NCBI GenBank assembly: GCA_038087875.1
Contig: CM075979.1
Span: 41,850,001 to 41,914,000, forward strand
From: Malacoraja senta
Lineage: Eukaryota
Direction: 5' to 3'
Length of the DNA stretch: 64,000 bases
Shown: piece after piece, positions 8,219 through 32,067 of the stretch
How positions within the stretch are numbered: position 1 is the stretch's first letter
Layout of the letters: every line of letters starts with the position of its first letter
Made by a program: the position numbers and the translations under genes
Notes under the pieces: generated by a model
The model's input: only the letters and a program-made list of their open reading frames with translations
Told to the model about the DNA's origin: nothing
Databases searched by the model: none

Positions 8219-8411
8219 TTATGCAAGTTTCAAGACTTCTTTCACCATTTCCCCAATTCCATCAAAAATCTCATGGATGGGGGCATTGCACATGAAGGCA
8301 CTGGTCGTCACCAATTTATTTCTCTTGTCGATGTGTACTTCATTGACATGCTTATTGACGTGCTCACAGCCTAACTCTTTCAATGCCTGGGCTGTTTTTG
8401 CATAGGGCCAC
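8219..8411 (-). CDS. GATD3-like: GATD3/ES1-like protein, exon 4 (last)
   Basis: Acceptor TTTCCAG|G. Encodes WPYAKTAQALKELGCEHVNKHVNEVHIDKRNKLVTTSAFMCNAPIHEIFDGIGEMVKEVLKLA*, the ES1/ElbB C-terminus. Phase 2 matches exon 3. Confidence 0.93.
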
Positions 8412-9132
8412 CTGGAAAGAAAATGTAAACCATCAATTGAGAAAGAGGGAAACAATTACCTAATAATGTCAGAAAAAAATGATTAAATGTACAGCATGAC
8501 ACATTCAGAGTGTGAAGCCACATGTAAAGCAAACCTACATCAAGAATTTGAATATACTATTGAGGCAACAATTTTCTGAATGATATTCCATGTCACTTAA
8601 CACCCTTTCTAGGTGTATAATTAGTGCATTTACTTTCTTGAGTTGGAATTGTATTGTTCATTGCATTTTCAATTCTAAAATAAGTTACCATATTTTACTT
8701 TTTCACTGTCAATAAAGTAAATATTCAAAGATATTGATAAATATTTGAAGTAAGCATATTATTGTGGATATTGGATGCTGCGTTGTGCTTTATATCCGTA
8801 TTCTGATGGTAAGCAAATTACAGATGTTAACTTTAATACACTTCATTACACCTGATTTGCTAACAGCAAATAATACATGTCCATAATAATTTTCTTTTAG
8901 AGGGAGCTAAATAGAATATAATTCAGATTGCAAGGATTCAATAAAATCGAAAAGGAGAACATTTCCACAAGGCATTAATCAAAAGTATCTAAGGAATGCA
9001 GTAACAACATAATCTTGGAAAGATAGGAGCATCAATGTGTTTAAATGTACATACAATTTAAGGAAATTGGCTTTGTGATGTATCACCAAGGTGTCACGGT
9101 TTATGGGAACATCCAATTTAAAGGCAAAAAAT

Positions 9133-9780
9133 CATAGAGCCATAGAATCAAACAACATAGAAACAGGCCATTCAGCCCAACTTATCCACACTGCCCTGTG
9201 AACACCCTTTGGTATTAACCCCATTTCCCTTCCTTCTATATCCATCCATGCAATTTAAGTGCTCTTCTTCAATACTTCTTAAAATGCTGTCAATGCCCCA
9301 GCTTCAACCAATCTCAGTCAGAGCATTCAAGACACTTACCACTTTCTAAGTGAAGAAGGTCCATCTCATATCCCTTTTAAATCTTTCTCCTTACACAAAA
9401 TCTGTCCTCTAGTATTATCTCCCTATGATACGATTAATAGTTTCCCCCAGTCTACCCTATTAAAGCATGATGTTGAGACTTGTTTCCGATGCCCTGATTA
9501 ATGAAAGCCAGTATTTACATATGCCTTCCATTATCTACCTGTAGTGCTACCTTCAAAGATCTGTGGTTTTGTAATCCACTTCATTCTCAATCCTCCCCAA
9601 GACCCTACCATTCAGAGTATAAATATTACCTCATTAGTACTCCCAAAATGCATCACCTCACATTTGTCTGGATTAAACTCAGTCTGCCATTCTATAATGC
9701 ATCAATATCTCTATGCAGCCCAAGACTTCTTTTACATTATCAACAGCTCCATCTATCTTTGTGTCATCTGCATGCTTACT
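9133..9780 (-). mobile_element. Old, degraded CR1 LINE fragment
   Basis: CATAGA-type tail and AAACAGGCCATTCAGCCCAAC 3' end, followed by decayed RT-like sequence (CCCAAAATGCATCACCTCACATTTGTCTGGATTAAACTC). Confidence 0.55.
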
Positions 9781-11386
9781 GATCATGTTTCCTACATTCT
9801 CATGCAAGACATGTGTATATTTCTCTTTAAATAAAATCTACTTGTACCATGGAATCCATTCTAACTATAATCCATATATAATCATGTCCCTTCACAAATT
9901 GGGTCCCAGTTTCTCAGATACCAAAGAAAGACAATCAATTATCAGTCAACTTCATAAGGTAAAACATTGGTCGGCTCCCAACTTACAAAGTATGATCAAG
10001 TAAGCGTACAAACTTTCAAAAGTTAACAAACTTCACTTGGTCAATTCTTATAAATGGTCATATCAATATTATATCTGTGATTTGTTCTGCAAGCACAGCC
10101 CAAATAAATCAAGTGTCTCACTATTTCTTTCAGAAATATGTTTCAAACTGCACAAAGTACAACAATGATAGGTCTGGCAGCATCTTTGAATATAATAATC
10201 GAGTCAAAGTTTTTGGTCAATTATCTTTTCATCAGAACTCTTTAAATGTATTATTCCCTTCTCCAAATAGTACATAATTAATTCCTTCATAGCCAGCTTC
10301 AAACTGGGCCTCATTGAACTCCCCTATTATCACCTTCCTACCCACCTTCTCCACGGCTTATCATAGTGAAGGTAAAGTACAGCAAAATGGAGGCAATCTT
10401 CCATACCTAGTACGCAGATGAACAGAATCAATATTTTCGCATCCAAAATGATACTCAAATTATGTGCTTTCCCCATCTACCAGTACCCATCAGATGAACA
10501 TATCAAATACAAATAGATAGGACAGACTCAATTAACCTAGGCTATATTGATTAATATAAATTTGCATGTTTTGAGATTAATTGAAAAGCAGAAATTAACA
10601 TGCTAATTCAAAGATCCAAAATCCTGGTTTCCAGTTTCTCCACTTGATTGTCAGCATCTCCCTAGCTCTCTGTGAAAGGCCTGTTCCACAAGTAACTTTT
10701 AAAATGGATATGTGCCTGGGGATTTTAAAGAAATGCACAAAAAGCAAAAAAACAGGAACTAACCAGAAATATTCTTTCAAAGAGTCAACACAAGCCAGAA
10801 GCATAAAAAAGCCTCTTTCTCGGACTGTTAGATTCCACGCCTCTGATGAGGAACACTAAATTTATGTATGTGGTTAAGCATGCCAGAAGAAACAATGAGA
10901 ATCAACAGTTTAATAAGGAGCCTGAAGGAATATCGGTGCTGAACAGTTGTGAATTTGTTTGAGATGGAAAAACTGGTTGAGCAAGCAAGCTTCCAGCCTG
11001 AGGCTTGGGAGCAACGCCAACAATCATCGAGGATTGTCACTTAATAAATCATTTTTGAACAGGTTAGATCTATGTGTGGATTGGACTAAAGTTAAATAAG
11101 ACTGGATTTACATTAGGCAAAGAAAGATCCATTTCCAAAGCCACTGCCTACTTTAACTGATAAATATTTTGACATCTAATATATCCAAAGATCATTTGTA
11201 ATTAATCTCTTAATGCTTATGTTGAATGACAATGGATGCCATCAATGATTCAGCCGTTTGTTATTGGTCTAATATTCAACGTTTCATTACAAATCTTAAT
11301 GTAATAGACTTTAACACTTTACATTGTTTGTCAAATAGCTGTGGGCATGGATTATTGGCAGATTTAATTAAAGGTGCTGCACTTAC

Positions 11387-11588
11387 TTCTCACATTCTGT
11401 GTCATAACCCACAGTTAGTTCACATCCTGGAATGAGTTTAGCTGCCAACACAGGAGAAATACAGCAGAGACCAATGGGTTTCTTTGTAGCATGACATTTT
11501 TTAATTGCTGATTCCACTGATGCCTCCACAGTGCAGTCCTTCCCTTCAACTGCCCAGCTGCTGAGATTTTTTGCAACCCCAAATCCAC
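11387..11588 (-). CDS. GATD3-like: GATD3/ES1-like protein, exon 3
   Basis: TTTGCAG|GT...AA|GTAAGT. Encodes [67 protein letters not shown], including the PGGFG.AKNL and GLCCI.P nucleophile-elbow motifs. This frame is not in the ORF track. Confidence 0.93.
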
Positions 11589-13384
11589 CTGCAAAGAGAA
11601 AACATAAAGAGATTTGACTGTAGTGTTGTTTCTAATGCAATGATTGAATAGAACCATCGGACACTTGACTGATAAATTGGTGTTGGTGAACTTATCTGCT
11701 CTGCCTTCTGAGAACTATATTCTGCACTCTATATCTTCCCCTTTGTTCTACCTATTGCATTCAAGTTTAGCGTGATTATATTTATGTATGTATCTGATTC
11801 GATAGCATGCAAAACAAAGCTTTTCACATACCTTGGTACACGTGACAATAAACCTAAACCTGTTTTATAGTCTTGGGAAGCCTACAAGAAAATCATGCAA
11901 CCTCAAATGCTTGAATATCAAAAATATATCTTATCATGACTTCTTGAACTACCGGAAGCAAATAGCTATATTTTTGACATACTAACTAAAATATAACATA
12001 ACAGCATTTGGCCTGTGCCTGTCTGGTTAAATGACAAAACTGATTTCTTTGCTTGTTCGTTGGTCCCTATATGCCTTTAAGAGGGATTAAATTATTTTCT
12101 GCCAATGAACTTTGGTCCCTCCAACCTGCCCTTCTTTACTCCAACTTTGCTGAAAAGAAGCCATGAGGAAAGTGATTTCAACTAATTGCCCAAAGTAAAC
12201 ACCTCTCTTCAAAAGTTCCAATTGGTCATCCATGCCATGGCAGATGAAGAATGGGGCTCAAGAATTAACCCCAACCTCCTTAATCAGTAGTCCCTTTTGA
12301 AGAAACACATCAGCTTGAACTGTTAACTCTACTCTCTCCTCAAAATTAGTTTAATCTGCTAAACATTTGACATTTTATGTTCTTATTTCTAGCATTTACA
12401 ACATCTTGTTTTTGGTTGAATAACATCATGTTGAAGGCTCCCTCAAGTGAAGCCAAGGAACTCAAAGTAAAGCAGAAATGCCCAAATTTAAAACAACCTA
12501 CTTATTATGTAATCGTGTACTCTAATGCAAATATCACTTTGGGACAGGGAAACAGTGATATATTGAAAATGAATAATTAACTTTCACATTCTAAGAACAT
12601 TTTGGACATTCTCTGATATCTAGCTATTAAGCAAAACCTAGTCATTTGGAAAACTGTGTTGCAATTAAAGCAGAGTGATTTAAACTTTATTAGTTATTAC
12701 TATTTATTCATTACAACAAACTTTCTCATCAAAGACAAATCATCTGCACTTGGTACTAACCTCAGTAACAAGAATTAAATCTAACACAAGATGGGGGTGA
12801 AGAGGATGTTTCCTCTTGTGGGAGAATCTAGAACTGCACGTTACAGCTTTTAAAAATAAGGGGTTGCTCACTTCGGGCAGAACTAGGGCAAACCTGTTTC
12901 TCTGAGAGGGTCATGAGTGTTTGAAACTATCTTCCTCAAAGCAACGGGGGGGTATATCGGGATATTTTCTAGGCAGAGTTAAATAGATCCTTAATAGGCA
13001 AAGCATGAAAGAATACCCTGTGAAGATAGGAATGCGGAGTGGAGGTTAGAGCCAAATTTTTTAATGACTATTAATTTGCGGAGCAGGCGTGAGGGTCGAG
13101 TGGTTGACTCCTGTTCGTGATTCACACATGTGAACCTTTGATGACTACATCAATGAATCGTTGCTGGTGCCACCAAGAGCAAGAGGCTGTTCCGCCTCAC
13201 ACCAGCAACCTGTACCGTGCCATCCAAAACGTTTCTCAGCAATTAACCTTTTCTATTTCACCCACTGTTGAAATGCTCAAGCTACAGAGAAAGTGTCAAC
13301 CACCGCCAGTCACCATCTATGACTTAAGATTAACAGAATGTCAGTTTGTGTGTGTGTGGGGGGGGGGGGGGTGTTGGGGGGAGG

Positions 13385-13582
13385 GGAGTGGCACAATGGT
13401 AGAGCTGCTGCCTCACATGGCCATAGACCCGGGTTCAGGGGGCTCGAGAAGGGTGGTGACAATGGCAGAGCTGCTACCTCCCGTGGCCAGAGACCCAGGT
13501 TCGATCCTGACCGTGGGTGTTGTCTGTACTGAGTTTACATGTTATCTCTGTGGCCGCGTGGGTTTTCCCCGGGTGCTCCGTT
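13385..13582 (+). mobile_element. V-SINE 5' fragment with duplicated tRNA-like head
   Basis: Two copies of G(G/T)(C/G)ACAATGG.AGAGCTGCT.CCTC..TGGCCA.AGACCC.GGTTC, then V-domain GCGTGGGTTTTCCCCGGGTGCTCCG. Confidence 0.65.
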
Positions 13583-13597
13583 TCAATATATTTGTCA

Positions 13598-14360
13598 CAT
13601 AGATACATAGAAAATAGGTGCAGGAGTAGGCCATTCGGCCCTTCGAGCCTGCACCGCCATTCAATATGATCATGGCTGATCATCCAACTCAGTATCCCGT
13701 ACCTGCCTTCTCTCCATACCCCCTGATCCCCTTAGCCACAAGGGCCACATCTAACTCTCTCTTAAATATAGCCAATGAACTGGCCTCAACTACCCTCTGT
13801 GGCAGAGAGTTCCAGAGATTCACCACTCTCTGTGTGAAAAAGTTTTTCTTTATCTCGGTCTTAAAGGATTTCCCCCTTATCCTTAAGCTGTGACCCCTTG
13901 TCCTGGACTTCCCCAACATCGGGAACAATCTTTCTGCATCTAGCCTGTCCAACCCCATAAGAATTTTGTACGTTTCTATAAGATCCCCTCTCAATCTCCT
14001 AAATTCTAGCGAGTATAAGCCAAGTCCATCCAGTCTTTTTTCATATGAAGGTCCTGACATCCCAGGAATCTGTCTGGTGAACCTTCTCTGCACTCCCTCT
14101 ATGGCTATAATGTCCTTCCTCAGATTTGGAGACCAAAACTGTACGCAATACTCCAGGTGTGGTCTCACCAAGACCCTGTACAACTGCAGTAGAACCTCCC
14201 TGCTCCTATACTCAAATCCTTTTGCTATGAAAGCTAACATACCATTCGCTTTCTTCACTACCTGCTGCACCTGCATGCCTACTTTCAATGACTGGTGTAC
14301 CATGACACCCAGGTCTCGCTGCATCTCCCCATTTCCTAATCGGCCACCATTTAGATAATA
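13598..14360 (-). mobile_element. CR1 LINE 3' fragment with intact 224-aa ORF2 C-terminus
   Basis: ORF 13689-14363 has RDLGV..KKANGML..LVRPHLEYCVQFWSP..RLRGDLIETYK. The 3' UTR closely matches the copy at 1-470. Confidence 0.93.
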
Positions 14361-14521
14361 CACTAGTTTACAAGCCCATCTGTTATTTATTGATTGTCAT
14401 AACAATATTTTGTTTAACAATATTCTGGACCAATTTCCGAGAAGTAGCTGGAATCGTCAATAAAGTTCAGATAGTCTAAAAAATATATAATGGATCGCTA
14501 GAAAAAGACCGGGATATTTAC

Positions 14522-14693
14522 CTGGGATGATCAGGGCATCGGTGTCATTGATGATGAGTTCAGTGAGGTCTTTGATGTTGCCCCTGGCGATCCGGCTGCT
14601 CTCCACCAGCACGTTGCGCACTTCTTTAGTGGGTTGTCCAGTCTTATGATCCACGACGTGCATCTGGTTCACGTTAGGGGCATAGAGTTGCAC
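14522..14693 (-). CDS. GATD3-like: GATD3/ES1-like protein, exon 2
   Basis: TTCCAG|GTG...CCAG|GTAAAT. Encodes VQLYAPNVNQMHVVDHKTGQPTKEVRNVLVESSRIARGNIKDLTELIINDTDALIIP, with the RNVL.ES.RIARG family signature. Confidence 0.95.
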
Positions 14694-14978
14694 CTGGAAC
14701 AAAACGAAACAAACTTTTGGAAGCAACGAGCTAAAGAGGCAGCTGGAAACAGAATGGGTGCGGTCGGATGGACGGTGAAACCGGTGACAGTAATTGCCGA
14801 AAGCAAAAGGAAATTAATCAGGGAGAGTGAAATATTTAGCACGAGACGCAAAAATGAAAGGATTGGATCTGAGCCTAATGTGACTGTGTGCAAGCGATGT
14901 CAGTTTCAACGCGAGGTCGGATGGAAAGTGAAAATGAAGAAGCGTTTCTGGCGATGAGCTGGGGGAAAGCGGACGTAC

Positions 14979-15089
14979 CTCAGCCCCGGCCCGGCTTAGC
15001 TGAACCATCACCGCCGAGGATTCGTGCACCTCGGAGCCGTCGTAGACACCACAACCGGACAGGATGACAGCCACTCGTTTCTTTGCCAT
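14979..15089 (-). CDS. GATD3-like: GATD3/ES1-like protein, exon 1 (total CDS 678 nt, 225 aa)
   Basis: Encodes [37 protein letters not shown], then donor GAG|[18 protein letters not shown] is the ES1/ElbB signature. Confidence 0.95.
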
Positions 15090-15169
15090 GTTCGACCCAG
15101 GCGGTGCAGTAATAGCGTGAGGTTTCAGTGGATCCTGACACAGTTGTCTCTCCGCTCTTTGTCGCCGGG

Positions 15170-15176
15170 TTTTATA
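15170..15176 (-). promoter_or_regulatory. TATA box of the GATD3-like gene
   Basis: TATAAAA on the minus strand ~80 nt upstream of the ATG, in a CpG-containing region. Confidence 0.6.
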
Positions 15177-17075
15177 GTGTGGAATGGTACCGCCCAGCGG
15201 CGGGGACTTGACTATGTAAATTATTTACTTGGCTCTCTCTCAACTTCCTGATTAGTCCTGACCAGGTAATTCTAAGGAAGACAAATACTCCCGGTCACCT
15301 TCAAACATTTATATTATATTTTCTAATTAATCGAAGCACATTCACAAGTTTATCGCATAATTTCTATTGTCCTGGCGTCACTTTTAAAGAAAATTGCCTT
15401 GTCATGCTGATTTTGGAAAAAACACGCATTGTGTTTGGTAACACCCTCATTCCCCCATCCACCCCCCACCCACCGACACCAGGAAATAGACGGAAGCCCG
15501 GGGCAGCTTCTGTATTTACCTCCTCAGATAATGTCCGTGCAATCTAGCACGTTTGTTGGTACCTGTCAACCAAAAGTCGTTTCAAATAACAATCGGTACC
15601 ATTAAAATGCTAACGGCATTAAATTGACACCTGAAAATTTCAGTGAAATAGGAAGGAACGGCAGATGCTGGTTTATACCAAAGATAGACACAAAGTGATG
15701 GAGAAACTCATCTCATCTCGTCAGGCAGCATCTCTGGAGAAAAGGAATACGAATAGGTGTCCATCTCCGCTGAATGGCCCGCTGAGTTACTCCAGCACTT
15801 CGTGTCGATCTTTATTTGACACCCGTTCCGTTATCTATTGCTTCTGAGGATAATCACTTTAAATTTGATTTTTCTAATTATCTGGTTCTCGCCCAAATAG
15901 CCATTCTTCTGTGAATGCACAAAACGCCACCAGCCAGTTCACCACGCCCTTGCCCAATCCAAATCCACATTCGGGGGGAGGCGACCAAGATGAGCAAGGT
16001 CTTGATCGTTGGAACAAAAGGTGCTGGAGTAACCCAGCGGGTCAGGTGGCACCTCTGGAGATCATGGACAGGTGGCGTTTCGGGAGGGAACGAGCCCGTA
16101 CAATTTAAGAGAAACAAGAGCAGATCTATTTGGCATTCAAATTAAGATTAAGTAATTCAGGTTGTGCAGAAAGTCGGTTTGGTGTTTAACATCCACACCG
16201 CATCATCAAATGCCAAATTTGTGAGCTGTAGCAATAATTACTAAGGACGTCGCACCCATATCATATGTTCCAGATTTCCTGGAAAGCTAAGAAACTGTTT
16301 CTAAAGAGGAGATGTGTTCACATAGCATACTGGGCGGATTCTAAATGACCCAGGATGTCTTTTACGCCCGATTAAAAACTTGAAAATATATAATTTTCGG
16401 TACATTTTATAGCTACAATAATTTACACGATTACAGAATGCTAAACATGATTCTAAACATGAAGCTTAAACCACGGGTTCCTAAATTGATCATGATTATA
16501 AGATTGTCTTAAATTAACATGAATCAAGTGACTTAATTGTAACTTGCAACGATACATATGTGAGTATAGGGTAATGAGCAGAACAAATTTATTAAGCAAG
16601 TCCCATCATTGCAAAGCATCCAGTACTTAACAAAGACAGCAAAAGAGAGGTGATTCTGGGAAAAGTAGAGCCAAGATATATGTCACCATTTTCCAAGCTG
16701 ACGTGACAAAACTAAAATGCCTGCAGACCCTTTTCCCATTTCCAAGAGGCGTGTTTGTGGACCTGTGTGTCCTGCATGTACTAACTCGAAAGGTAATCCG
16801 AGGACTGGGATTAGATGTGCGTACTTGCTTGCCCACTTGCCTCCTTGGGGATCTACAGTTGCTGGGCATTCTTACCCGTTTCCCCATTCAGTGCATGAAC
16901 CATATGACTTTAAATCACCGCACAGCGGAATTCAGTTCTCGTGATCGAGTGGGATTGCTTCATGTGATGATTTCTTCACATGGGATTTCCCCGTCATAGT
17001 GCTATCATAAGGCAGAGAAATTAATTGAATGAGAGCTAATAAAAGAGAATATAAGCTTCACTTAGGTTCATCGAT

Positions 17076-17240
17076 ATAGAAACATAGAACATAAGTGAAG
17101 GAGCAGGCCATTCGGCCTTTCGAGTCCAATTTGATCATGGCCGATCATCCAAAATCAGTACCCCGTTACTGCTTCCCCCCCCCCCCCCATATCCCTTGAT
17201 TCCGTTAGCCCTAAGTGCGATATTAACTCTTTTGAATACA
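17076..17240 (-). mobile_element. CR1 LINE 3' fragment
   Basis: ATAGAAACATAGAA tail plus GGAGCAGGCCATTCGGCC...GATCATCCAAAATCAGTACCCCG. Confidence 0.7.
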
Positions 17241-18692
17241 TCATATTTGGATCTTTCACCATGAGAATCCCCTTGGTAATTGTCGCTACAATTGCTGGTA
17301 ATTTTCGTTGTTGCCTTTCTAACGTTTGGCGCTGCTTGTGGTCTGTCTCCCTAATTTAGAACTTAACTTGTGGACCAGACCTGTCTTTATCCGTAACTAT
17401 TTTAAAGCTAATAAAACTGTGCTCGCCGACCCCGAAAGGTTCACCCACTGAAACAATTATATAAGAGCAGGCCAATCTTTGCCCTTTCCCTTGTCGAGTC
17501 CGATACATATTGCTGAGAAAACTTTCCTAAACACATTTGATAATTACACTTCGTTTAAGCCATCGTGGTGTTCTAAAAAGGGCAGGTGCTATGTAAACCC
17601 AAGCTGTCCTCTCCACCCCCACCCTTGAAGGGAAGAGTTTGTGTGTGTGGGGGGGGGGGGGGGTGCGGACAACACGCGTGGTGTCAATTGCGAGGCTTCA
17701 GAGTGTTTGTTCTTAAATACGTCGCCAAAGCATAGATCCTACCCGTCCATTAATTAAGTGTCTCCACCCACGGAGAGTTCTTTACAACTGTTAACCTGTA
17801 AGAAGGGAACTATCAATAATTGAAACGAATCGGTCTGGTCAATTGCCAGGCATTAAACAAAATAGTAATCAAATGATACGACGCGAGTGAAAATCAACGG
17901 CTGAGAGGTGTGTTTCAACTGGATCAAATTGATGGGTGGTGTTCGTACGGTAAGTAAAAAAGTCAGCCCTGTCCCACTGTACGAGTTCATTCAAGAGCTC
18001 TCCCGAGTTTAAAAAAAAATCAAACTCGTGGTAAGCACGTAGAATCATACACTGCCTCTCTCTTGGAAGTGAGACGGGGAAGGTGCTGGTAGTCAGCATC
18101 TCGCAAGCAGGGTCCCAGTTTGTCTTCATAATTAATACAGTCTCAGACGGAAATAGTGAATAAACGCCTTATGTCTCTCCTAAACTCATCTAAATTTTAA
18201 GTATATTTGAACACATATTAAACATCCACATTTGGAATTATATCGTTTCAGTCGTGTAGCTATTTGTCCAAGTATTTTATTTCAACAATCGACAGTCACA
18301 TTTTTATAACTCGAGGCTACGTACTGGTTCTCGCTCACACCCAGTGTAAGAAAAAAACAGGTAAATTGTATTTCCGTGCTGGCTTCTTCCGCGTTGTTGG
18401 GCGTTGACGTTTTACAGACCCTGTCAAAGCACTCTGCGGCGATTTAATTTCACCGTCTGGTTAATTTATTGATGAGTTGGCTACAGGCGAGGAGCGTGGA
18501 GATGGGATTGGTTTCCCATCGGAGAGCCGGTCACTTGTATGAATCTGGTATTTTAACCAATCTCAATATACAACGAGGATTCTGCACAATGTGCTTATGC
18601 CTCTAGACAGTATGTCCCTTCTCTCCAGCCACACACCCAACTGTGTCTTTCAACCCGCCCAGGCTCGGTCTTCTTAGTAGTTGCCGTCTACA

Positions 18693-19015
18693 CTTAGTTT
18701 AGTTTAGAGATAGAGCATGGAAACAAGCCCTGAGGACCACCACGTCCATACTATTATCCCACGCTCACCTCCACTCGGCACAGTGGCGCAGCGGTATAGT
18801 TCCTGGCTCACAGCGTCAGGAACCCAAGTTCGACCTGACTACGGGAGATATCTGCACAAAAGTACCCACAAAGACGTGCAGGTTTGTGGGTTATATGACC
18901 TGCAAATTGCCCATAGTGTGTCGGATAGAACTAGTGTAAGGGTGATCGTTGGTCGACCAACGATCGGCGCGGACGGTGGGTCGAATGGCCTGTTGCCACG
19001 CTGTATCACTAAACC
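18693..19015. mobile_element. Two adjacent V-SINE fragments (minus-strand tail 18693-18775; plus-strand internally deleted copy 18777-19015)
   Basis: TTAGTTTAGTTTAGAGATAGAGCATGGAAACAAGCCC, then GGCACAGTGGCGCAGCGGTA...CAAAGACGTGCAGGTTTGT...GGCCTGTTGCCACGCTGTATCACTAAAC. Confidence 0.65.
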
Positions 19016-19454
19016 CTACACTGGGGAAAATTTTACAGAGATCTTTTATTCAAAGAGAGTTTAAAGTGCAAACTGTATTTCTGCAGACGAAACTGCAGGT
19101 TATTTCAGATTTTCAGTTACCTTAAAGGTTGGTGAGGACATGTTCAACGTCTGCTTTGGGTCAAAATCTAAAGGAAGAAACGGGCTAGAGTTTTGCGGAC
19201 CCGCACACTTCGTCCTAACATTTTCTATTGCATTTTCTTGTATTACTAGCTTCTCTCTCGTACGTGAAATTGTGCATTATCCCTAGAGGTCAAACACCTT
19301 TCTTTGCCTTTGTTGCATTTGATTCTGGAGCCACTTTGCGAGCTGCGATATAACGGTGGCAGGTGGAATGACAACGCGCCTCCAGCACCCAACCGAGAGT
19401 CTTCCGTGGGATTTGCATATTCTGCGTGTCTGGCAGTAGGAGGAGGGAGGTTGA

Positions 19455-19461
19455 TATAAAA
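19455..19461 (+). promoter_or_regulatory. TATA box of the SatP-repeat/YrdC gene
   Basis: TATAAAA ~150 nt upstream of ATG 19604, in CpG-rich sequence. Octamer ATTTGCAT at 19411-19418. Confidence 0.55.
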
Positions 19462-19603
19462 GAGCAGCAAGGAGCTGCTGATTCATCTGTGGACCGAGAA
19501 GTCGGCGCACATCGTCGAGTCTTACGAAATATTCAAGGGAAAATTCATGTCATAGAGTTCAGCTCAATATTTACAACACATTCTTCTCAACTCAGAGCTC
19601 GAC

Positions 19604-19673
19604 ATGATGGAGCAAGAATACGACGGCGTCGAGACGCTGCACTATTCCGTGGGGATTCTCAGTATAAGCGCAG
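19604..19673 (+). CDS. SatP/YaaH-like repeat membrane protein with YrdC domain, exon 1 (total CDS 2598 nt, ~865 aa)
   Basis: GACATGATGG start. Encodes MMEQEYDGVETLHYSVGILSISA, then donor CAG|GTAATC. Phase 1 joins exon 2 in frame. Confidence 0.75.
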
Positions 19674-19755
19674 GTAATCGCCGAGCCTTCAAGCATTTCC
19701 TCCTAAATTTGTTTCATTGGTTATAAAGGATAACCCCTTGTTTATTGTGTGTTAG

Positions 19756-19860
19756 GTGCTCTGTTGCTGGCTGTGAATTACTATTCCACTGTTCCGCTGA
19801 TCCCCAGCACGGCTCTCGGTATTTTACTGCTTATCGTGGCGGCTCTCCTATGCTATACAG
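19756..19860 (+). CDS. SatP-repeat/YrdC gene, exon 2
   Basis: TTAG|GT...CAG|GTGAGT. Encodes the hydrophobic GALLLAVNYYSTVPLIPSTALGILLLIVAALLCYT. Phase 1-1. Confidence 0.85.
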
Positions 19861-23309: not shown

Positions 23310-24992
23310 GTATACGGAAGAGTTCAAATCGAGCTATCCCTTTTGTGAATCTATGCCTGACAGTGTCTGTCCTGTGGTGTGGATCTGGCCTGATCCACAT
23401 CTTAATGGGAGCAAATGTAGTTCAGAGTAATTCAGTCAGAAATGCTCTGGTCCCTGGTTTTGTAGCTTTAGTCTTGGTACTCTTCATCATTGGGGTTGTG
23501 GGGTTCATCCAAAAGGATGTAATCCCTGGTGTGATTGCCTTTGCTATTTCTCTTGCTACTGCTCATGAGATTGCTGCATTATATAATAAATCTTTTGGTC
23601 ATTCTGCAGTGGCTTCAAATTATTTGATCGTGTCCTTTATCGGCATTTACTTTGGATTGGGCCGTGCTTCTGTCTTCATAAGCAAAGGACAAATCACTTT
23701 CCCAGGGACTAGTCTGTCCAAGAATAAGTCCCATGTGACATTGAAATCGATAAGCTTCTTTAACAATGACACAATAGTTCTGGGATACATCACTAATATG
23801 CTATCTGCCAGTGTGTTCGGATGTCACCTATTGGGTGTAACTTCCAAACTGTCTGTTGGTCAGATTCCCTGGCTGTGGACAGCAGGCGTCTACCAAATTA
23901 TAGTTTGTATTTTGTCTTACAGGGCTTTTGACACGCTGAATGCTACATTCTTTGGTTTGACCTCCATATTAAAATTTGCAGAGGGATATGCATTGCTGTA
24001 CAGCATATGGCAAAGCAGCCAACCCTTCTTCCCAGTTCCAGTCCCGATTGTTCTTGCTGTCCTATTTTTCACGCTGGCTCTGTTCATGACCAGTAAAAGC
24101 CTTATTGATGGATTGTATCCATTGTTTTTTGTTGCCTATTGTATAGCAGTATCAGCTCGCTCCACAGGCTTTTTCCATGGTGGAGCACAAGGCGTGAGTG
24201 TGGCTATATTTATAGCATCTGCTTGCGTTACTTTAATTTCTCTTTTCAATAGCAAAGGGCCCCTGACATATCCCACTGGAGAAGGGGTTGTTAAAACTTT
24301 ATTCAGTAGGATGAATGCCTTATCTCTAAAGTCAGGTAAAGACTTCCATAACCCATATTTAGGATACTCCAGATACTCAGACGCTGAGATTCTAGCCCAT
24401 GCCTGCAATGTTGTGGCTTGTTTTGCCATCACTGTATCAATCAATCCTTTGGCACCTTTAGCCACTGTAGTTTTGCCTTGGATTGTTATTCCTGGGGGTG
24501 TCCTTCAGATCCTGTGTGGCTCAATCTCTTTTTCCCGGGGTAAAACCCTTGAAAGCTGTGCTTTCATTCTGTATGGTTTAATATGGATAATCTGGGGTTT
24601 GACCAGATATGGTGGTCTCTATGGTTCGACTAGGGGGTTTGGTATTGCTGTGGGAATTATTTGCTTCCTTCTCTTTAACAGTTTTGTGGTGATTGGCACT
24701 TGCTTTCTGAACACGGCATGGTTTGCCTTATCACTCAGCTTTCAGTTGATCTTAATAAGCTTCCTTTTGGATGCCATTAATGCAATTCCTTATGGATATG
24801 ATATTGGAGTCACCATCATTTTTGGTTTGATTAGTTTTTACTGCTTTCTGGCCACCCTCTTTAACCAAAGCTTTGAGAAACCCCAGTTACCTCTGGGACG
24901 GGCCTGGGCAAGCCTGTGTGGCTTTGGGCAGAACAAATCTGTGTGCCCTCATCTGCCTTCAAGAAAAACCACCTCAGTCAGAAAGATTGCAG
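23310..24992 (+). CDS. SatP-repeat/YrdC gene, exon 3 (1683 nt; most transmembrane helices)
   Basis: Lies within the 610-aa ORF. Acceptor (T)nCAG|GT and donor CAG|GTAAGG, phase 1-1. Contains GGVLQILCG..FSRGKTLESCAFILYGLIW and Y..LATLFNQSFEKPQLPLG, which match SatP/YaaH motifs. Confidence 0.92.
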
Positions 24993-26548: not shown

Positions 26549-26648
26549 AAATTATGAAAAATGGAGGAATCTGTGGTATTCCAACAGACACTGTGTATGT
26601 GTTGGTGGCAGCCTGCAATTGTCCTGATGCTGTTGAGAAGGCTTACAA
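26549..26648 (+). CDS. SatP-repeat/YrdC gene, exon 4 (start of YrdC/Sua5 domain)
   Basis: TTCTGCAG|AA...AA|GTAGGA. Encodes EIMKNGGICGIPTDTVYVLVAACNCPDAVEKAY, with the PT(D/E)TVY YrdC motif. Confidence 0.9.
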
Positions 26649-26819
26649 GTAGGAACTGTTTTACATTGAGTGTTATTCACTTGGGCCTGTACCAAAGACC
26701 TTTAGTGCATTTGGAGTGGAGAACATCACTAATGCACCTATCTATTCACGCTTATATCTGAACATAGAAAATAATAGCTGTATATTTGGAATTATTTCTT
26801 ATTGTATTTACTAGATCCT

Positions 26820-26950
26820 GAAATGTATTTATTTATGCCTACTATATTCTGTTGTGCTGAAGCAAAGCAAGAATTTCATTGTCCTATCTGGGACACATGA
26901 CAATAAACTCTCTTGAATCTCTTGAATCTTTTGAATCTTTTGAATCTTGA
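26820..26950 (+). mobile_element. LINE-like 3' terminal fragment with (TCTTGAA)-type tail
   Basis: ACACATGACAATAAACTC followed by TCTTGAATC tandem units. Related ends occur at ~11840, ~27260 and ~57900. Confidence 0.45.
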
Positions 26951-27682
26951 AATTTGCAAGCATAAGAGCAGAACTGGTGCAAAAAAATGTATCCACTTCA
27001 AGAAAACCTGAAACACTCAACAAGTCAGTCAGACTAAAGAAGGATCTTCAATCTGAAATGTTAACTTTGATTCTCTTGCCATAGATGTTGCCTGATCTGC
27101 CAAGTGTTTGCAGCATTTTTTTCCTCACAATTCCAGCCCCCTTTTTTTTATTTTAATGTATCATTATTGGTTATCAATCTGTGCACTGTGGATGACTTGA
27201 TTGTATTCGCTCTTCTTTGACTGAATAGTAAAACAAAAGCTTTTCACTGTACTTCGGTACACATGACGATGATAAACGAAACTAAACCTATTATGAAGCC
27301 ATTGCAATGAATATATTTCATTGCTTGTTAGGTTGTTATTTCAACATATCTCAAGACATAAATATTAAATATCAAAAAATGTATGGATCATATTTAACAC
27401 TGAACATTTGTTGTGGGATAAATGTGTAAAGTGATAACATCCCTTGTATGTAAAGATAATGTACAAACATCCTTGGAAGTACAATGTTCCATTTATTTAA
27501 CTACTTTCTTGAAGAACTATCCTAATACAAAGGATGAGCTAAAGATGACTGATTCAGTTCCTTAATTTCTTGCATGTCAAGTAATGCCAATACCAAGCAG
27601 CAGTATTTTGATGCTTTATAATTTGTAAGCTAAGAATAGATGAAAAATATAACTAAGAAATGTATATTTTTTGTTTGAACAG

Positions 27683-27831
27683 CACAAAGAAGCAGGCCAA
27701 GGACAGGCCCATGTCTCTGTGGATCTCCAGCTTAGCACAACTGGAACCAGTTAAACATCTGTTAAACCCTCTATTGTGGGACTTTATGCAGGCAGTTTGG
27801 CCATCGTCTATCAGCCTTGTCATCCCCAGGG
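27683..27831 (+). CDS. SatP-repeat/YrdC gene, exon 5
   Basis: AACAG|C...AGGG|GTAATA. Encodes TKKQAKDRPMSLWISSLAQLEPVKHLLNPLLWDFMQAVWPSSISLVIPR. Phase 2-1. Confidence 0.9.
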
Positions 27832-28217
27832 GTAATACGCCTTTGTTCATCTCCATATTCTTCCTCTAAACCACCCACCAAGCAAATATGTTTTTCTCAT
27901 TCATGCAGTGTTTCATTTTCCAGCTCAAACGACAGATTGGAAATCTTTTATTGGGTGTCTCTATTCTTTGCTGTATCAAAATGCAGTTGGAAAAATCCAC
28001 TTTCATTCTGTCGTGAAGTATCTTGTGAAGTATTTCATCAATTTAGAACACTATCAGTTTATCAAAGTATAACCATGGACATTCCATGCATATTTGCCAA
28101 TCTCAAATTGCATAATTAAAATTAACTATCTGTTCCACTAGCACACAATTCATGTGTCAATCTGATTTAAATCAATGTGGGAGAATGATTATTAACAAAT
28201 GTTGTTTTCATTGGAAG

Positions 28218-28330
28218 GTGAATGGCTGGAACCATTTGGACTGAAACATGCAGATAAGTACATCGGGACACCTCAAAGCATCGCCATTAGGATTCCAGAC
28301 TGTGCTGTTACAACACATCTCATTGATCAG
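28218..28330 (+). CDS. SatP-repeat/YrdC gene, exon 6
   Basis: GAAG|GT...CAG|GTGAGA. Encodes GEWLEPFGLKHADKYIGTPQSIAIRIPDCAVTTHLIDQ, with the I.IR.P YrdC motif. Confidence 0.9.
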
Positions 28331-28872
28331 GTGAGATATTCCGAAGGAGCTTTTTTATATATTTTGCATATATTGCTGAATTTCCTTGACACTTTTCATT
28401 GCCTTTATTTACTTTCCCGATTCAGTGGGTTTTGACAGAATATCTGAAATAAAATCTATGTTTAGAAATAGCATCGGTAGAGAGAGAAATGGTTTCATCA
28501 GAACTGCTCCACAGAATGCCTTCTAATCTACTGAGAATTTCCAGCATTTTCAGTTTTTATTTTGGTTTTCCAACATCTGCAGTTCTTTTGATTTTCACAT
28601 AGAATATCCACTTGTTTCACTGGGAAATACTTGTAACTATGAACCAGTAGTTAATTCCAGGTGTGTGATTGCTTTATTTCATGGGGTCAGTTGTAAGTAT
28701 TTCAGAATTACCAAAGAAATACTGTTCAGCTATATTTTGCTAATGAACCTATCACCATAATATGTCTTATTCTAAAGTCTGCAGCATGCATAAAAGGAAA
28801 TACATTGTTCGATGGAATACAAAACAAATGAAACAAATCAGCATGTGATTATTAGATTGTAGGAAAGAGAAC

Positions 28873-29103
28873 AGTGTGTGTGCGTGTGTGAGTTTGTGCA
28901 TGCATGTGTGCATGAGTGTGTGTGCGCGAGTGTATTCATGCGTGTATGAGTGCGTGCATGAGTGCATTCATGTGTGTGCGTGCATGCATGTGTGAGTGTG
29001 CATGCATGCGTCCATGAGTGTGTGTGCATGTGCGTGTGTGCATTCATGAGTGTGTATGAGTGCATTTGTATGTGTATGCATGAGGGCATTCATTCGTGTG
29101 TGT
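28873..29103. repeat. TG/CATG-rich low-complexity microsatellite
   Basis: Interleaved TGTG, GCATG and TGAGTG units. Confidence 0.9.
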
Positions 29104-29530
29104 TTGGTGCAAGAGAGAAAGCAAAAGCAGCTCTCACAATTCTTGTGGAAGATTTGCGTTTTTAAGCAGAATGCAGGTTTGGTTAAGTCTTATTTTTGTA
29201 GAAATTATATTAAGTGTGGAAACTGTCAGTACTAAAAATTTCACTAAAGGTGGTTTTGAAAAAAGTTTCATTTTGTTTTTACTGTGGTGCCTGGAAGAGC
29301 TTTAATTTTATCATGGCCTGACACGGTTCTTCCCAACTTCAAGGCCTTACAGGTCTAGTCACTGGATAATGATTATGAGCAAAAACCATTGCAAAATTCC
29401 CTTTGCTAGCCAGATTGCTAGGGTTCATTATGGAGCTTACTTCCTCTTCAGCAGAAACTCAATCAGAACAGGGAATGAGTGTAGATCCACTTCTGTCTAC
29501 ATGGTAGCTAATCTTTCTCTGCATGTGCAG

Positions 29531-29620
29531 GTAGGCCCTATAGCGGTGACATCAGCAAATCCAACAGGAGAAGCAGACACCACACACCACAATCAAGTCT
29601 ATGCCAAACTTGGAGAAAAG
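29531..29620 (+). CDS. SatP-repeat/YrdC gene, exon 7
   Basis: GCAG|GTA...AAG|GTAAAG. Encodes VGPIAVTSANPTGEADTTHHNQVYAKLGEK, with the TSAN.(S/T)G YrdC motif. Confidence 0.92.
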
Positions 29621-29707
29621 GTAAAGTTAACTCTTTAAGTTTCAAACGTAAGTTCTGACATGTATCGTCATAGTTAATTACACATGGAAATTTTGTTCCC
29701 GGTACAG

Positions 29708-29830
29708 GTTAATGGAGTATTGTGTGATGGGCCGTCACCTGAGAATATTGCCTCTACTGTTGTAGACTGTACCAAGATAGAGACGGGTACACTTGGTTTC
29801 TTTAGAGTTGGCATTGTGCCCAAATCAGAG
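29708..29830 (+). CDS. SatP-repeat/YrdC gene, exon 8
   Basis: ACAG|GTT...GAG|GTAAGA. Encodes VNGVLCDGPSPENIASTVVDCTKIETGTLGFFRVGIVPKSE, with the STVVD and R.G YrdC motifs. Confidence 0.92.
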
Positions 29831-31164
29831 GTAAGAGTAACATCATATTGATGCATTGATGTAACATATCTGTCCTGAAATCAGTTTTATAGTTTGACCT
29901 TGCACGAGGGCAGATTTAAAAATGAAAATCTGGAGATTTGGGAGAAAAAATAAAGATGAAGAAATGTATTTAAATTAATGGTTCTCAGAAAGACTTCAAA
30001 AGACTCCAATCCTATCATCCATTTCATTCTTGAATGATTCTCACCAGACAAGTATCCACAGCTCATTATGAGAAGCAAGCTGAAATATATATTCTACTTT
30101 ATTCTACTCTACCTGACGGAATATCATACTTTGAAGTAACTTTTCAGATTTACTTGTTTTATTCGGGTTACTGCCCTGTGTTTCACAAAGGTCACTTTCC
30201 AGATGTCTCCATTTGCGGTTGAAGAGGGTAGATTTTCTCCAGCGGTTCCAAATCCAGTGACATTAGGATCAGTTTTGTCCTTCTTTCTATTTTGGCAATT
30301 GTTAGAACAGCCTCCGTTTACTTTTGTGTTCTAAACCTGCCTATCTTTTGCTTCTGTGTGCTGAAGCAAGACAGGGTTGATAAAATATGGTTTTACCATA
30401 AAGTCTCGGTAGAATCTGAACCTCCTCTGAGTTTCATCCTGTTTAAGATCTTAATATTTTATTCGTCACTTTCCTTTAGTTAGCCATAATTTAACAATGA
30501 GTCTGATAATAATCTCCTTAATTTTCATCCTTACTGACTTCAATACCATTCATAAGTATTTGTGATGCCCAAGTGTTTTTTAAAAAACTTTAATCCTGGC
30601 AGTATAATCTCGTACACACCATGTCACTTTACCCAACCTATTGGATTGTTACTGAAAAAAACTCGTTTCCTGAGTATACTTCAGGAAAGGAAATTTCTCA
30701 TCCTTACTGGGTATAGCTTAAATGATACTTCAGTCCCACCAATCTGGTTGACTCCTTGAGGACCAATTAACTTGAGGAGCAATTGGGGATGGTTAGTAAA
30801 TCCAGACTTAGTCAGTGTATCTCCATCCTGTGAATGAATAAAAATATAGGAATAATGGCTCATTCTGTCCACTTTGTCCAACTCATTGTGCAACTTAATG
30901 GCTCTCATTATTTCTTTGATTGAAAAACAACTTTTTTAATGGAAGATCTTTATCCAAATATAGAGATACCTCCATTAAAGAGTGACATAAACTCAGCAGT
31001 CACTTATTCCCACAACACAACTAAATAGTAATGGCTTTACTATCACAGCTTCGATGTTCTTGAAAGTTTCAATAATTTCATTGTTCACCTTCTTCTGAAA
31101 CTAATCTCAGTGGTTGGGAAACATTCCAATAGCTGCTGAGAGTCCAGCCAATTCTGGACTGGCA

Positions 31165-31425
31165 CTGGCAGCATGGTGGCACAGAAGCTGCCTTACAGCA
31201 CCAGAGACCCGAATTCAATCTTGACTATGGGTGCTCTCTGTACAGAGTTTGTACAATCTCCCTGTGACTGCGAAGGTTTCCAGTTTCCTCCCACACTCCA
31301 AAGATGTGCAGGTTTGTAGGTAATTGGCTTCTGTAACCATGTAAATAGTCTCCAGTTTACAGGATAGAACTACAACACGGGCTGATAGCTGTTTCTGCAT
31401 TGTACCTCTAAAGTCTAAAGTAAAG
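31165..31425 (+). mobile_element. V-SINE (HE1-like), degraded
   Basis: GGCAGCATGGTGGCACAG..CTGCCTTACAGCACCAGAGACCC...TTCCTCCCACACTCCAAAGATGTGCAGGTTTGTAGGTAATTGG. Confidence 0.75.
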
Positions 31426-31902
31426 CTCATTACTAAAGAAGGCATCACAATCAAAGCCAATCCTATCAATGTCCACACTGAATAACAAAGGACAAGAAAA
31501 ACTTGGTTATGTTATTTTTCATTTCTCACCATTGAATTAAGGATGCTCGGAGCCTCAAATGCACATAGCTCCCCGTTATAGAGTAGAAGGCTATCCTCAG
31601 TTGCTTGCAATAAATGCATGGTTAACACCATTGTGGTTGTGTGCAGTACTCTGAAACTGAACTTTGCCTCCTTTGAGACTATTTTGGAAGTGGAGCACAA
31701 TCATATATCCGCATTCAGTGCCAGCAACTGAATGAAATTTGTGAATCAAACCCACAAGCACCTGCTGTGTATTGTTTCATATTTACATTATAAATCATCA
31801 ATGGAATAATATTTGAAGTATTTATTCTAATGGATGAATTCTAATGGAACAATTCTAAAATTGTTTTCTTTTGCTAATGAACTATTTATATTTTGATTGA
31901 AG

Positions 31903-32067
31903 ATTCTGCAGATATTCGAAGAAGTGCAGAAGAAATCTCTGAAAGGTCATTCCAATGATGGATTCATTGATGGTCATTCAGAACCTAACACAGTTCAGCA
32001 GCCACAGACTCCATATTCCTTTGACAACATGGGCTTTGTAAATGAGAAGGAAGATGATAAGTTGTAG
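31903..32067 (+). CDS. SatP-repeat/YrdC gene, exon 9 (last)
   Basis: Acceptor GAAG|ATT, with an alternative in-frame CAG| at 31912. Encodes ILQIFEEVQKKSLKGHSNDGFIDGHSEPNTVQQPQTPYSFDNMGFVNEKEDDKL*. Phase 0. Confidence 0.75.
   Translation: MLQIFEEVQKKSLKGHSNDGFIDGHSEPNTVQQPQTPYSFDNMGFVNEKEDDKL

Follow-up and report, generated by a model that had tools for sequence, protein, structure and literature searches.

The window analysed here is a 64,000-nt stretch of the Malacoraja senta genome. It contains two divergently transcribed genes, gene A on the minus strand and gene B on the plus strand, whose ATGs at 15089 and 19604 are 4,514 nt apart. Both genes are spliced in RNA and each has its own TATA box. 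The original prediction had described such a pair, and the observation itself is confirmed. Gene A extends from its ATG to the end of its stop codon at 8219 and comprises four GT-AG exons that encode 225 aa with no internal stop:

15090-15175, minus strand: 5'UTR and TATA box of gene A (tataaaa at 15175-15169); RNA contigs extend to 15138 and 15128
14979-15089, minus strand: exon 1, coding part, with the protein start; the mature domain begins at residue 4
14522-14693, minus strand: exon 2; ElbB model positions 37-92, E 7.4e-21
11387-11588, minus strand: exon 3 (GGFGVAKNL ... PIGLCCISP), holding the nucleophile-elbow Cys137; ElbB model positions 94-159, E 4.3e-18
8219-8411, minus strand: exon 4, the last 63 aa and the stop TAA (8221-8219), with the AG acceptor at 8413-8412; ElbB model positions 159-217, E 8.9e-14

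The TATA box of gene A lies ~30 nt upstream of the furthest observed transcript end (15138), and two RNA runs of related skates yielded contigs with the spliced joint of intron 1 (14691/14977). The exons aligned collinearly with the ElbB model NF008747 over positions 2-217 of 218, and their four scores sum to roughly 239 bits, the cut-off of the model being 180 bits. In comparisons with the PDB, exon 3 matched the ElbB entries 1oy1 and 1vhq (E 1e-9) and SCRP-27A (5lir; E 1.6e-10). All 51 near-invariant residues of the family are kept, Cys137 included. Metagenome proteins, several of which carry the source annotation ElbB ('enhancing lycopene biosynthesis protein 2'), were 43-52% identical to gene A. 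Judged by its sequence, gene A is a complete ElbB/ES1-family protein of the DJ-1 superfamily.

The full-length match, the 51 near-invariant residues and the elbow cysteine are what gene A has in common with mitochondrial GATD3A/ES1 and E. coli ElbB. Unlike GATD3A/ES1, it has no mitochondrial presequence, because the mature domain begins at residue 4, and its product is therefore presumably cytosolic. In a phylogenetic tree, every linked gene A copy fell into one clade (SH-aLRT 98), apart from the other vertebrate ES1 clade, which contains second platypus, bird and lizard copies. Gene A-type proteins of 224 aa carry the UniProt name 'Si:ch211-153b23.5'. The zebrafish ortholog of gene A is si:ch211-153b23.5 (hereafter.5); relative to mitochondrial GATD3, gene A is a paralog, not an ortholog.

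Gene B extends from its ATG to the end of its stop codon at 32067, with nine GT-AG exons that encode 865 aa and a 3'UTR reaching to about 32781:

19456-19603, plus strand: TATA box (tataaaa, 19456-19462) and 5'UTR of gene B; Leucoraja cDNA L002 aligned from 19485
19604-19673, plus strand: exon 1; exon 1-2 joint seen in RNA
19756-19860, plus strand: exon 2; exon 1-2 joint seen in RNA
23310-24992, plus strand: exon 3, most of the three SatP-like repeats, each of six helices (18 modelled in all)
26549-26648, plus strand: exon 4, where the YrdC domain begins; PF01300 E 4.3e-6
27683-27831, plus strand: exon 5, YrdC; KKQ where the canonical KxR sits
28218-28330, plus strand: exon 6, YrdC
29531-29620, plus strand: exon 7, YrdC; SAN motif retained
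29708-29830, plus strand: exon 8, YrdC
31903-32067, plus strand: exon 9, coding part, a disordered acidic tail and the stop

The TATA box of gene B is upstream of the cDNA 5' end (≤19485), and contigs of the same two skate RNA runs contain the exon 1-2 joint. The protein is 95.5% identical to that of Leucoraja erinacea (P0001). According to its AlphaFold model, gene B consists of 3 × 6 helices and an alpha/beta domain, with residues 826-864 at pLDDT below 50. Foldseek matched this model to SatP (5ys3, 5zug; TMt 0.72-0.75) and to YrdC/Sua5 (TMt up to 0.78), each with a probability of 1.0; PF01300 scored 114.8 bits. An NPxAPL-like motif (INPLAPLA) remains in the third repeat, which matched AceTr_1 with an E of 4.4e-7, AceTr profile matches of this repeat being weak and scoring under the curated cut-offs. 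Residues 603-811 contain the majority of the nearly invariant alignment columns, which makes the YrdC domain the best-conserved part.

Ato-YrdC fusions carry the NCBI name 'si:ch211-153b23.4'. Gene B is the ortholog of this zebrafish gene (hereafter.4), the vertebrate 'Ato-YrdC' protein. The Ato/AceTr-YrdC family of vertebrates was described in 2025 (Ghasemi et al., bioRxiv 10.1101/2025.05.26.656167), and gene B shares its three six-helix Gpr1/Fun34/YaaH domains, its C-terminal Sua5/YciO/YrdC domain and its length of ~865 aa; its identity to the named orthologs is 55-95%, with no difference in structure. All three repeats of gene B adopt the fold of SatP/YaaH (E. coli, Citrobacter koseri) and of the fungal acetate-succinate channels Ato1/Ady2. 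SatP, however, is one protomer of a homohexamer, whereas gene B carries three repeats in a single chain, has no SatP/AceTr sequence signature in repeats 1 and 2, and has gained a YrdC domain. With the SatP fold in gene B and the metagenome relatives of gene A, it was fair to call both families largely microbial in type.

The region between the two TATA boxes contains the following:

15176-19455, no strand: shared intergenic spacer, mostly high-copy interspersed repeats with few single-copy islands
18351-18553, no strand: conserved, single-copy non-coding block, 68% identical over 221 nt to positions 6591-6810 of shark Heptranchias L011 (blastn E 1e-10)

Depth spikes occur in the spacer at 15644-16240, 17037-17434, 17833-18230 and 18629-19026. 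Its GC content is 0.44, and there is therefore no CpG island. The conserved block is a candidate shared regulatory element of the two genes. A scan for common inflammatory transcription-factor motifs yielded no consistent site across species. Gene A was contained in more RNA runs than gene B, and their transcript levels were >100-fold apart in one run; the skate runs are not an independent test of expression, because they were picked for containing both genes.

The pair resembles classical vertebrate bidirectional-promoter pairs in its divergent orientation and expression co-variation. It differs from them in that the transcription starts are ~4.3 kb apart, that the spacer is 1.5-12.6 kb in other species, and that there are two TATA boxes and no CpG island. 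We rejected a bidirectional promoter on the distance between the starts and the separate TATA boxes. An operon-like organization was likewise rejected, the transcripts being divergent, separate and very different in abundance.

The pair is arranged head-to-head, with no gene between, in eight to nine further genomes, including another skate (Leucoraja, spacer of 4.8 kb), a shark (Heptranchias, 12.6 kb), gar (6.9 kb), two teleosts (Astyanax, 2.9 kb; Danio aesculapii, 1.5 kb), gecko (5.2 kb), ostrich (3.0 kb) and platypus (3.2 kb). The four-exon structure of gene A was identical in the loci that span the whole gene. Among the matches listed, proteins of both genes were encoded on contigs of identical size in at least 21 species. 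No partner gene was called within 10 kb in Scyliorhinus or Microcaecilia. The microsynteny that had been anticipated thus holds, and the head-to-head order is older than the split between sharks and bony vertebrates and was kept across jawed vertebrates.

A test for co-loss of the two genes in mammals had also been proposed. No therian ortholog of either gene was present among the best 120 matches in each of three lists, but platypus retains both side by side; 'non-mammalian' should therefore read 'non-therian'. Ghasemi et al. (10.1101/2025.05.26.656167) report that mammals lack the Ato-YrdC family, whereas platypus carries it here; the neighbouring ES1-like gene, IRG1L and expression are not discussed there. 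Outside vertebrates, Ato-YrdC fusions are present in molluscs and amphioxus.

In published zebrafish datasets of whole-larva bulk RNA,.4 and.5 rise together with irg1l (PMC6980646, PMC9228135, PMC11140123, PMC8877790), as does the paralogous Ato-YrdC gene.3. The two genes correlated with r = 0.87 over 18 conditions (data of PMC8877790), and both increased upon infection with Shigella and upon exposure to PFOS, consistent with the co-expression that had been predicted. In chicken, the ES1-like LOC422305, a probable gene A ortholog, rose ~20-fold in the non-leukocyte cells of the gut in response to Salmonella (PMC4256799, PMC4574724). Such infection-inducibility in epithelia sets it apart from GATD3A/ES1 and ElbB. 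Overall, the original interpretation is partly supported: the synteny, the lack of therian orthologs among the matches listed and the co-expression support a co-regulated unit, but not an 'operon-like' one, and what favours the proposed glyoxal and methylglyoxal chemistry is the known activity of the two families.

According to one preprint, on which the proximity of IRG1L to the pair rests, the five genes closest to vertebrate IRG1L include ones with YrdC and GAT domains, as do those closest to paleo-IRG1 in oyster and amphioxus (Szeligowski et al., bioRxiv 10.1101/2022.06.17.496652). VOC and 2OG oxygenase genes are further neighbours given in the literature. IRG1L itself is absent from the window. 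Szeligowski et al. label the neighbours by domain only, draw no functional link and saw 'no obvious functionally related gene clustering'. They report that IRG1L, a mitochondrial-matrix enzyme, was lost in therians and kept in platypus, the phyletic pattern of the pair described here. The Ato-YrdC fusion and paleo-IRG1 are, moreover, both present in molluscs and amphioxus. The pair thus occurs in the same range of species as IRG1L, the enzyme that makes itaconate. Together, the conditions of induction and the neighbouring genes suggest an IRG1L/itaconate response rather than to glyoxal/methylglyoxal chemistry.

We therefore favour, with a probability of roughly 0.55, an ancient divergent pair that is co-induced within an infection- and stress-inducible epithelial programme tied to IRG1L. 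Through gene B, a small carboxylate of the size of acetate, succinate or itaconate would cross a membrane; each chain has three SatP-like repeats in the model, so that two chains could rebuild a SatP-type six-fold ring. The carboxylate may be gated or processed by the YrdC domain of gene B, which is of the nucleotide/carboxylate-binding type with a changed KxR motif. The nucleophilic cysteine of gene A might hydrolyse or hydrate a reactive carbonyl or electrophile that arises in the same response. Shared spacer elements, not a common promoter, probably hold the two genes together. Set against this reading are the matrix location of IRG1L and the lack of a presequence in gene A; the separate promoters, the unequal transcript levels and the lack of consistent inflammatory motifs across species; and Scyliorhinus and Microcaecilia, with no partner called within 10 kb.

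It is possible, though doubtful, that the adjacency is historical: regulatory elements of one gene may lie within or beyond the other, or no breakpoint may have become fixed, and genes of unrelated pathways would be co-induced through their shared chromatin. The individual TATA promoters, the variable spacer, the disparate abundances and the larger number of runs with gene A are consistent with this, and the chicken ES1 papers (PMC4256799, PMC4574724) make no mention of a YrdC gene. However, every lineage with readable DNA, teleosts included, has the two genes directly next to each other and divergently oriented, and neither gene has a therian ortholog among the matches considered. The correlation of.4 with.5, and their co-variation with.3 and irg1l, further argue against mere history.

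We consider it improbable that the pair is the dicarbonyl detoxify-and-export unit of the original prediction, in which gene A would be a glyoxalase III that converts glyoxal and methylglyoxal into glycolate and lactate, and gene B would export these products. Glyoxalase III activity is reported for mouse ES1, and deglycase activity for GATD3A (PMC10209487, PMC8935817); AceTr/Ato proteins carry acetate and lactate (10.1101/2025.05.26.656167). The catalytic cysteine is kept in gene A, and inflammation raises glycolytic flux, so that induction by infection does not speak against such a unit. However, vertebrates already export lactate via MCTs, and nothing ties the pair specifically to dicarbonyl stress. 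What recurs as the co-regulated partner is irg1l rather than a gene of the glyoxalase pathway, and the neighbours (IRG1L, VOC, 2OG oxygenase) and patchy distribution (molluscs, amphioxus, non-therian vertebrates) better fit an IRG1-centred function.

It is very unlikely that the YrdC domain is the business end of gene B, as a membrane-anchored adenylating enzyme or nucleotide sensor (carbamoyl-AMP- or TC-AMP-like) supplied with substrate via the channel, with gene A as a bystander: this domain is the best-conserved part, keeps its fold and SxN motif, and has been suggested by Ghasemi et al. to catalyse a carbamoyl-AMP-like reaction (10.1101/2025.05.26.656167), but its canonical KxR arginine is replaced (KKQ), and the conserved pairing with gene A and the co-induction are left unaccounted for.

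Gene A, the minus-strand ElbB/ES1-type gene and ortholog of zebrafish si:ch211-153b23.5 (.5), comprises four exons bounded by GT-AG splice sites. It encodes a product of 225 amino acids without an internal stop.

Exons of gene A
15089-14979, minus strand, exon 1
14693-14522, minus strand, exon 2
11588-11387, minus strand, exon 3
8411-8219, minus strand, exon 4

Against the NCBIfam ElbB profile (NF008747), the exons yielded in-order matches at positions 2-35, 37-92, 94-159 and 159-217 of 218. E-values ranged from 6e-12 to 7e-21, and the summed scores came to roughly 239 bits (cut-off 180). Exon 3 alone retrieved ElbB crystal structures. All 51 near-invariant columns of the ElbB/ES1 family (51/51) are kept, including the nucleophile-elbow C137 in GLCCISP. 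The Pfam DJ-1_PfpI profile gave a sub-threshold 22.5 bits on P0186, the Leucoraja ortholog. By profile match and invariant residues, gene A is assigned to the ElbB/ES1 family of the DJ-1/PfpI superfamily. Within this family, glyoxalase III or deglycase activity is reportedly known for mouse ES1 and GATD3A only.

In a maximum-likelihood tree, every ES1-like copy linked to the fusion gene described below fell into one.5-type clade (SH-aLRT 98). The other platypus, bird, lizard and fish copies formed a second vertebrate ES1 clade (SH-aLRT 95), separate from the first, and the presequence-bearing ES1 copies of amphioxus and Heterodontus lay outside the.5-type clade. On this placement, gene A is therefore a paralog of GATD3, not an ortholog. 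Because its conserved domain begins at residue 4, gene A lacks a mitochondrial presequence. It thus has neither the presequence nor the GATD3-clade placement that mark orthologs of GATD3 (mitochondrial ES1). The word 'mitochondrial' in the NCBI names of gene A orthologs was probably inherited by homology, and the annotation is corrected accordingly: the gene named 'GATD3, mitochondrial' is a distinct paralog without a presequence. UniProt names the 224-aa proteins of Latimeria, Callorhinchus, Salmo and Takifugu 'Si:ch211-153b23.5'. The sister of the platypus gene A copy in the tree, P0252, was suspected to be marsupial; the protein is from Anolis.

Gene B, the plus-strand partner, encodes a triple SatP-like repeat fused to a YrdC domain (Ato-YrdC). 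Its exon boundaries were fixed from splice sites and reading phase, with the Leucoraja protein as reference.

Exons of gene B
19604-19673, plus strand, exon 1
19756-19860, plus strand, exon 2
23310-24992, plus strand, exon 3
26549-26648, plus strand, exon 4
27683-27831, plus strand, exon 5
28218-28330, plus strand, exon 6
29531-29620, plus strand, exon 7
29708-29830, plus strand, exon 8
31903-32067, plus strand, exon 9

The product is 865 amino acids long, identical to the Leucoraja protein at 825 of 864 positions. An AlphaFold2 model of this 95%-identical Leucoraja ortholog (pLDDT 78.5) comprises three sets of six helices, two disordered linkers and an alpha/beta domain. In Foldseek searches, the helical repeats matched SatP structures 5ys3 and 5zug (TMt 0.72-0.75, probability 1.0). 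According to the model, gene B has the six-transmembrane-helix SatP fold (AceTr / Gpr1_Fun34_YaaH). The AceTr profiles matched the third repeat alone and below their curated cut-offs, at 15.8 bits for PF01184 (cut-off 25) and 30.1 bits for NF038013 (cut-off 50); precomputed PF01184 matches are present on many gene B orthologs. Repeat 3 is also the only one to carry INPLAPLA, which is related to the NPAPLGL signature motif of AceTr/SatP/Ato proteins. The C-terminal domain matched the YrdC profile PF01300 at 114.8 bits, and Foldseek paired it with TsaC2, Sua5 and YrdC (probability 1.0, TMt up to 0.78). Of the motifs of TC-AMP synthases, SxN is kept as SAN; the catalytic KxR lacks its arginine, KKQ aligning with K-E-R of TsaC2.

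This architecture was published in 2025 without an assigned function, together with the hypothesis that a dimer of triple repeats forms a hexameric ring (10.1101/2025.05.26.656167). The same work called the Ato-YrdC family absent from mammals, whereas platypus has gene B. In NCBI, the fusion proteins are named 'si:ch211-153b23.4' (.4). At 19604-19606 the window has two successive ATG codons (MMEQ...), and transcripts of two related skates have three bases fewer (MEQ...). Intron 6 contains low-complexity CA/TG-rich DNA at 28767-29165, with His/Thr-rich and Cys/Val-rich pseudo-ORFs.

The locus was compared across nine further genomes. Wherever DNA was retrieved, a gene of 224-228 amino acids lies head-to-head with a gene of ~870 amino acids, and no gene is called between them. 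The arrangement is thus shared by skate, shark, gar, teleosts, gecko, ostrich and platypus, and the order of the two genes has been kept for more than 400 million years.

Spacer between genes A and B
Leucoraja, 4.8 kb
Astyanax, 2.9 kb
gar, 6.9 kb
ostrich, 3.0 kb
platypus, 3.2 kb
Danio aesculapii, 1.5 kb
gecko, 5.2 kb
shark Heptranchias, 12.6 kb (from record coordinates)

The window is collinear with Leucoraja erinacea at about 90-95% at the DNA level, and the two products are 95-96% identical to their counterparts there. In tblastn searches with the gene A protein, orthology was confirmed, with identities of 60-78% per exon and the same exon boundaries; all four exons were seen where the whole gene fell inside the fetched locus. 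In gene tables of the large genomes of Scyliorhinus and Microcaecilia, no partner gene was called within 10 kb. Both proteins of the caecilian Microcaecilia are recorded on a contig of the same length, and for 21 species the contigs recorded for the two are identical in length. Two points appear not to have been stated previously: that gene B and a cytosolic ES1 paralog are strictly paired head-to-head throughout gnathostomes, and that the two genes co-vary.

Beyond gene B, an SRPX-like gene is present in skate and in the catshark Scyliorhinus. Beyond gene A, a centrin-type EF-hand gene is present in ostrich (locus L006, 1-158) and in gecko, where a 1045-aa, OGT-like TPR protein follows it (both in locus L010, at 16104-19807 and 24139-24862). 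The human centrin 2 and OGT genes lie on the X chromosome, which would suggest where a therian remnant of the locus might be sought.

Three homology searches, one of them seeded with the platypus protein, returned no therian protein among the best 120 matches of each. Judged from these matches, the distribution fits a loss of both genes in therians. Platypus retains the two genes side by side, so a co-loss would concern therians and not mammals as a whole. An exhaustive search with the membrane part of gene B returned 55 cluster representatives only, with clusters at 50% identity. Among them are full-length YrdC fusions related to gene B, from scallops, a cephalopod, a snail, a chiton and amphioxus. 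Near-identical proteins resembling si:ch211-153b23.3 (.3), a paralogous Ato-YrdC gene of zebrafish, are recorded in Tachysurus vachellii under five locus tags (013710, 013716, 013722, 013727 and, for one shared sequence, 013716/013722), which suggests tandem amplification of a block of several genes.

The original prediction described the pair as divergent, each gene with its own TATA box, and as operon-like. The first description was confirmed: the ATGs lie 4,514 nt apart, and both TATA boxes were located.

TATA boxes (tataaaa), each ~30 nt upstream of the most 5' transcript end observed
15175-15169, minus strand, gene A
19456-19462, plus strand, gene B

'Operon-like' is inapt for separate divergent transcripts with their own TATA boxes and starts ~4.3 kb apart. 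Bidirectional promoters, for their part, have starts less than 1 kb apart, a shared promoter and usually a CpG island, features not found in the A/B pair. Given the distance between the starts, the two TATA boxes and the lack of a CpG island (GC 0.44), the pair is therefore divergent and not a bidirectional-promoter pair. In two RNA runs of related skates, both genes are represented by contigs that span their spliced joints. The gene A transcript was far more abundant in one run, with a depth of 470-617 versus 3.5 for gene B; these runs, which bear no tissue labels and were picked for holding the two genes, validate transcripts and not co-expression. Runs X10 and X11, considered as RNA evidence, proved to be DNA.

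The spacer consists mostly of interspersed repeats. Motifs for NF-kB, C/EBP, AP-1, STAT, ISRE, Nrf2, HRE and Oct followed no consistent pattern in the 500 nt preceding each ATG, compared over eight species, and beyond elasmobranchs the spacer alignment was limited to exon 1. The spacer also has a single-copy non-coding block, 18351-18553, that is conserved in Heptranchias at 68% over 221 nt (E 1e-10). Its distance upstream of gene B is ~1.1 kb in skate and ~3.3 kb in the shark; the block is a candidate shared enhancer. That the adjacency of genes A and B is purely historical linkage is a serious, if less likely, rival.

In zebrafish, the.4 and.5 genes co-vary. We computed r = 0.87 between them over 18 conditions from a published table (PMC8877790), the median among the other genes taken from it being -0.08; si:ch211-207n23.2 and sult5a1 track the pair almost as closely (r 0.67-0.86). 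Co-induction with irg1l, which encodes an itaconate-making enzyme, emerges from three papers; these and the correlation between.4 and.5 are all based on bulk RNA. In a Shigella-induced heat map,.4 and.5 adjoin each other and irg1l (PMC6980646). PFOS placed both among the top five raised genes, together with irg1l (PMC9228135), and one co-expression module containing irg1l and noxo1a has.3 and.5 among its hub genes (PMC11140123). The proposal that the pair is a co-regulated unit thus gains support from head-to-head synteny, the lack of therians among the best 120 matches, and co-variation in zebrafish.

A chicken gene may extend this pattern. Salmonella induces the 'ES1' gene LOC422305 (chromosome 4) 20-28-fold in non-leukocyte gut cells, alongside IRG1 (PMC4256799, PMC4574724). 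It comes after the centrin-like LOC422304 in NCBI numbering. Because gene A of ostrich and gecko has a centrin-type neighbour, we infer that LOC422305 is the gene A ortholog. The A/B pair could then account for chicken 'ES1' being among the most strongly Salmonella-induced gut genes.

Jawed vertebrates, platypus among them, have IRG1L, a second itaconate synthase, but marsupials and placentals have lost it; paleo-IRG1 is restricted to molluscs, amphioxus and lamprey (10.1101/2022.06.17.496652). Their five nearest neighbours include VOC, YrdC, 2OG-Fe(II)-oxygenase and GAT-domain genes (10.1101/2022.06.17.496652). The distribution of gene B follows the same pattern, with molluscs, amphioxus and jawed vertebrates including platypus, and no therian among the best 120 matches. 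Neither the window nor the 10-kb flanks of nine loci contain a called gene of the MmgE/PrpD family, to which IRG1 belongs, and no IRG1L, VOC or 2OG-oxygenase gene was found in the window or the 10-kb flanks of the fetched loci. The shared patchy distribution, the reported neighbourhood and the co-induction point to an IRG1L/itaconate response rather than to dicarbonyl detoxification. The particular chemistry of the original prediction, conversion of glyoxal to glycolate or lactate followed by export, is unsupported. We put at roughly 55% the probability that the pair is conserved, co-induced and part of an IRG1L-linked epithelial response. The Ato-YrdC fusion and the cytosolic ES1 paralog are accordingly candidates for the handling of carboxylates or itaconate in epithelia of fish, birds and reptiles, a role open to direct testing.

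In a wider reading, which we regard as doubtful, the pair would form the conserved centre of an ancient gene cluster for metabolism in animals. Its members would be IRG1L, two Ato-YrdC paralogs, a cytosolic ES1-like enzyme, a VOC-family protein and a 2OG-Fe(II) oxygenase. The cluster, possibly of bacterial gene origin, would range from molluscs to platypus, be induced by infection in barrier epithelia, and have disappeared from therian mammals in one block; it would serve to produce, alter and transport itaconate or an acid derived from it. In fungi and Pseudomonas, itaconate genes adjoin VOC-type and oxidising enzymes, and functionally linked gene clusters are rare in animals.

The rest of the window holds several further features. 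A near-identical 10.4-kb tandem duplication (32238-42650 and 42651-53065; offset 10,413-10,415 nt) begins within the gene B 3'UTR, and sampled 300-nt stretches are 100% identical. Segments 38127-39308 and 48542-49723 of the duplication align to the end of Leucoraja's downstream Sushi/HYR/DUF4174 (SRPX-like) gene. The region is single-copy in Leucoraja, and the duplication could be recent or an assembly artefact. An Rfam scan of the window returned one tRNA, which may be a functional gene or a piece of a tRNA-derived repeat, and nothing else.

54636-54710, minus strand, tRNA-Phe (GAA), Rfam 64.9 bits, also called by ARAGORN

C-terminal fragments of LINE reverse transcriptase from one family (…LVRP.LEYC.QFWSP…) occur at 13689-14363 (minus), 56009-56599 (plus) and 42-275 (plus), one of them inside gene A intron 2; matching DNA is very high-copy in sequencing runs. 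Finally, a minisatellite-like array at 1057-1725 reads as LKVLKQAALPLV repeats in one frame and as FKTKGKAA repeats on the opposite strand.
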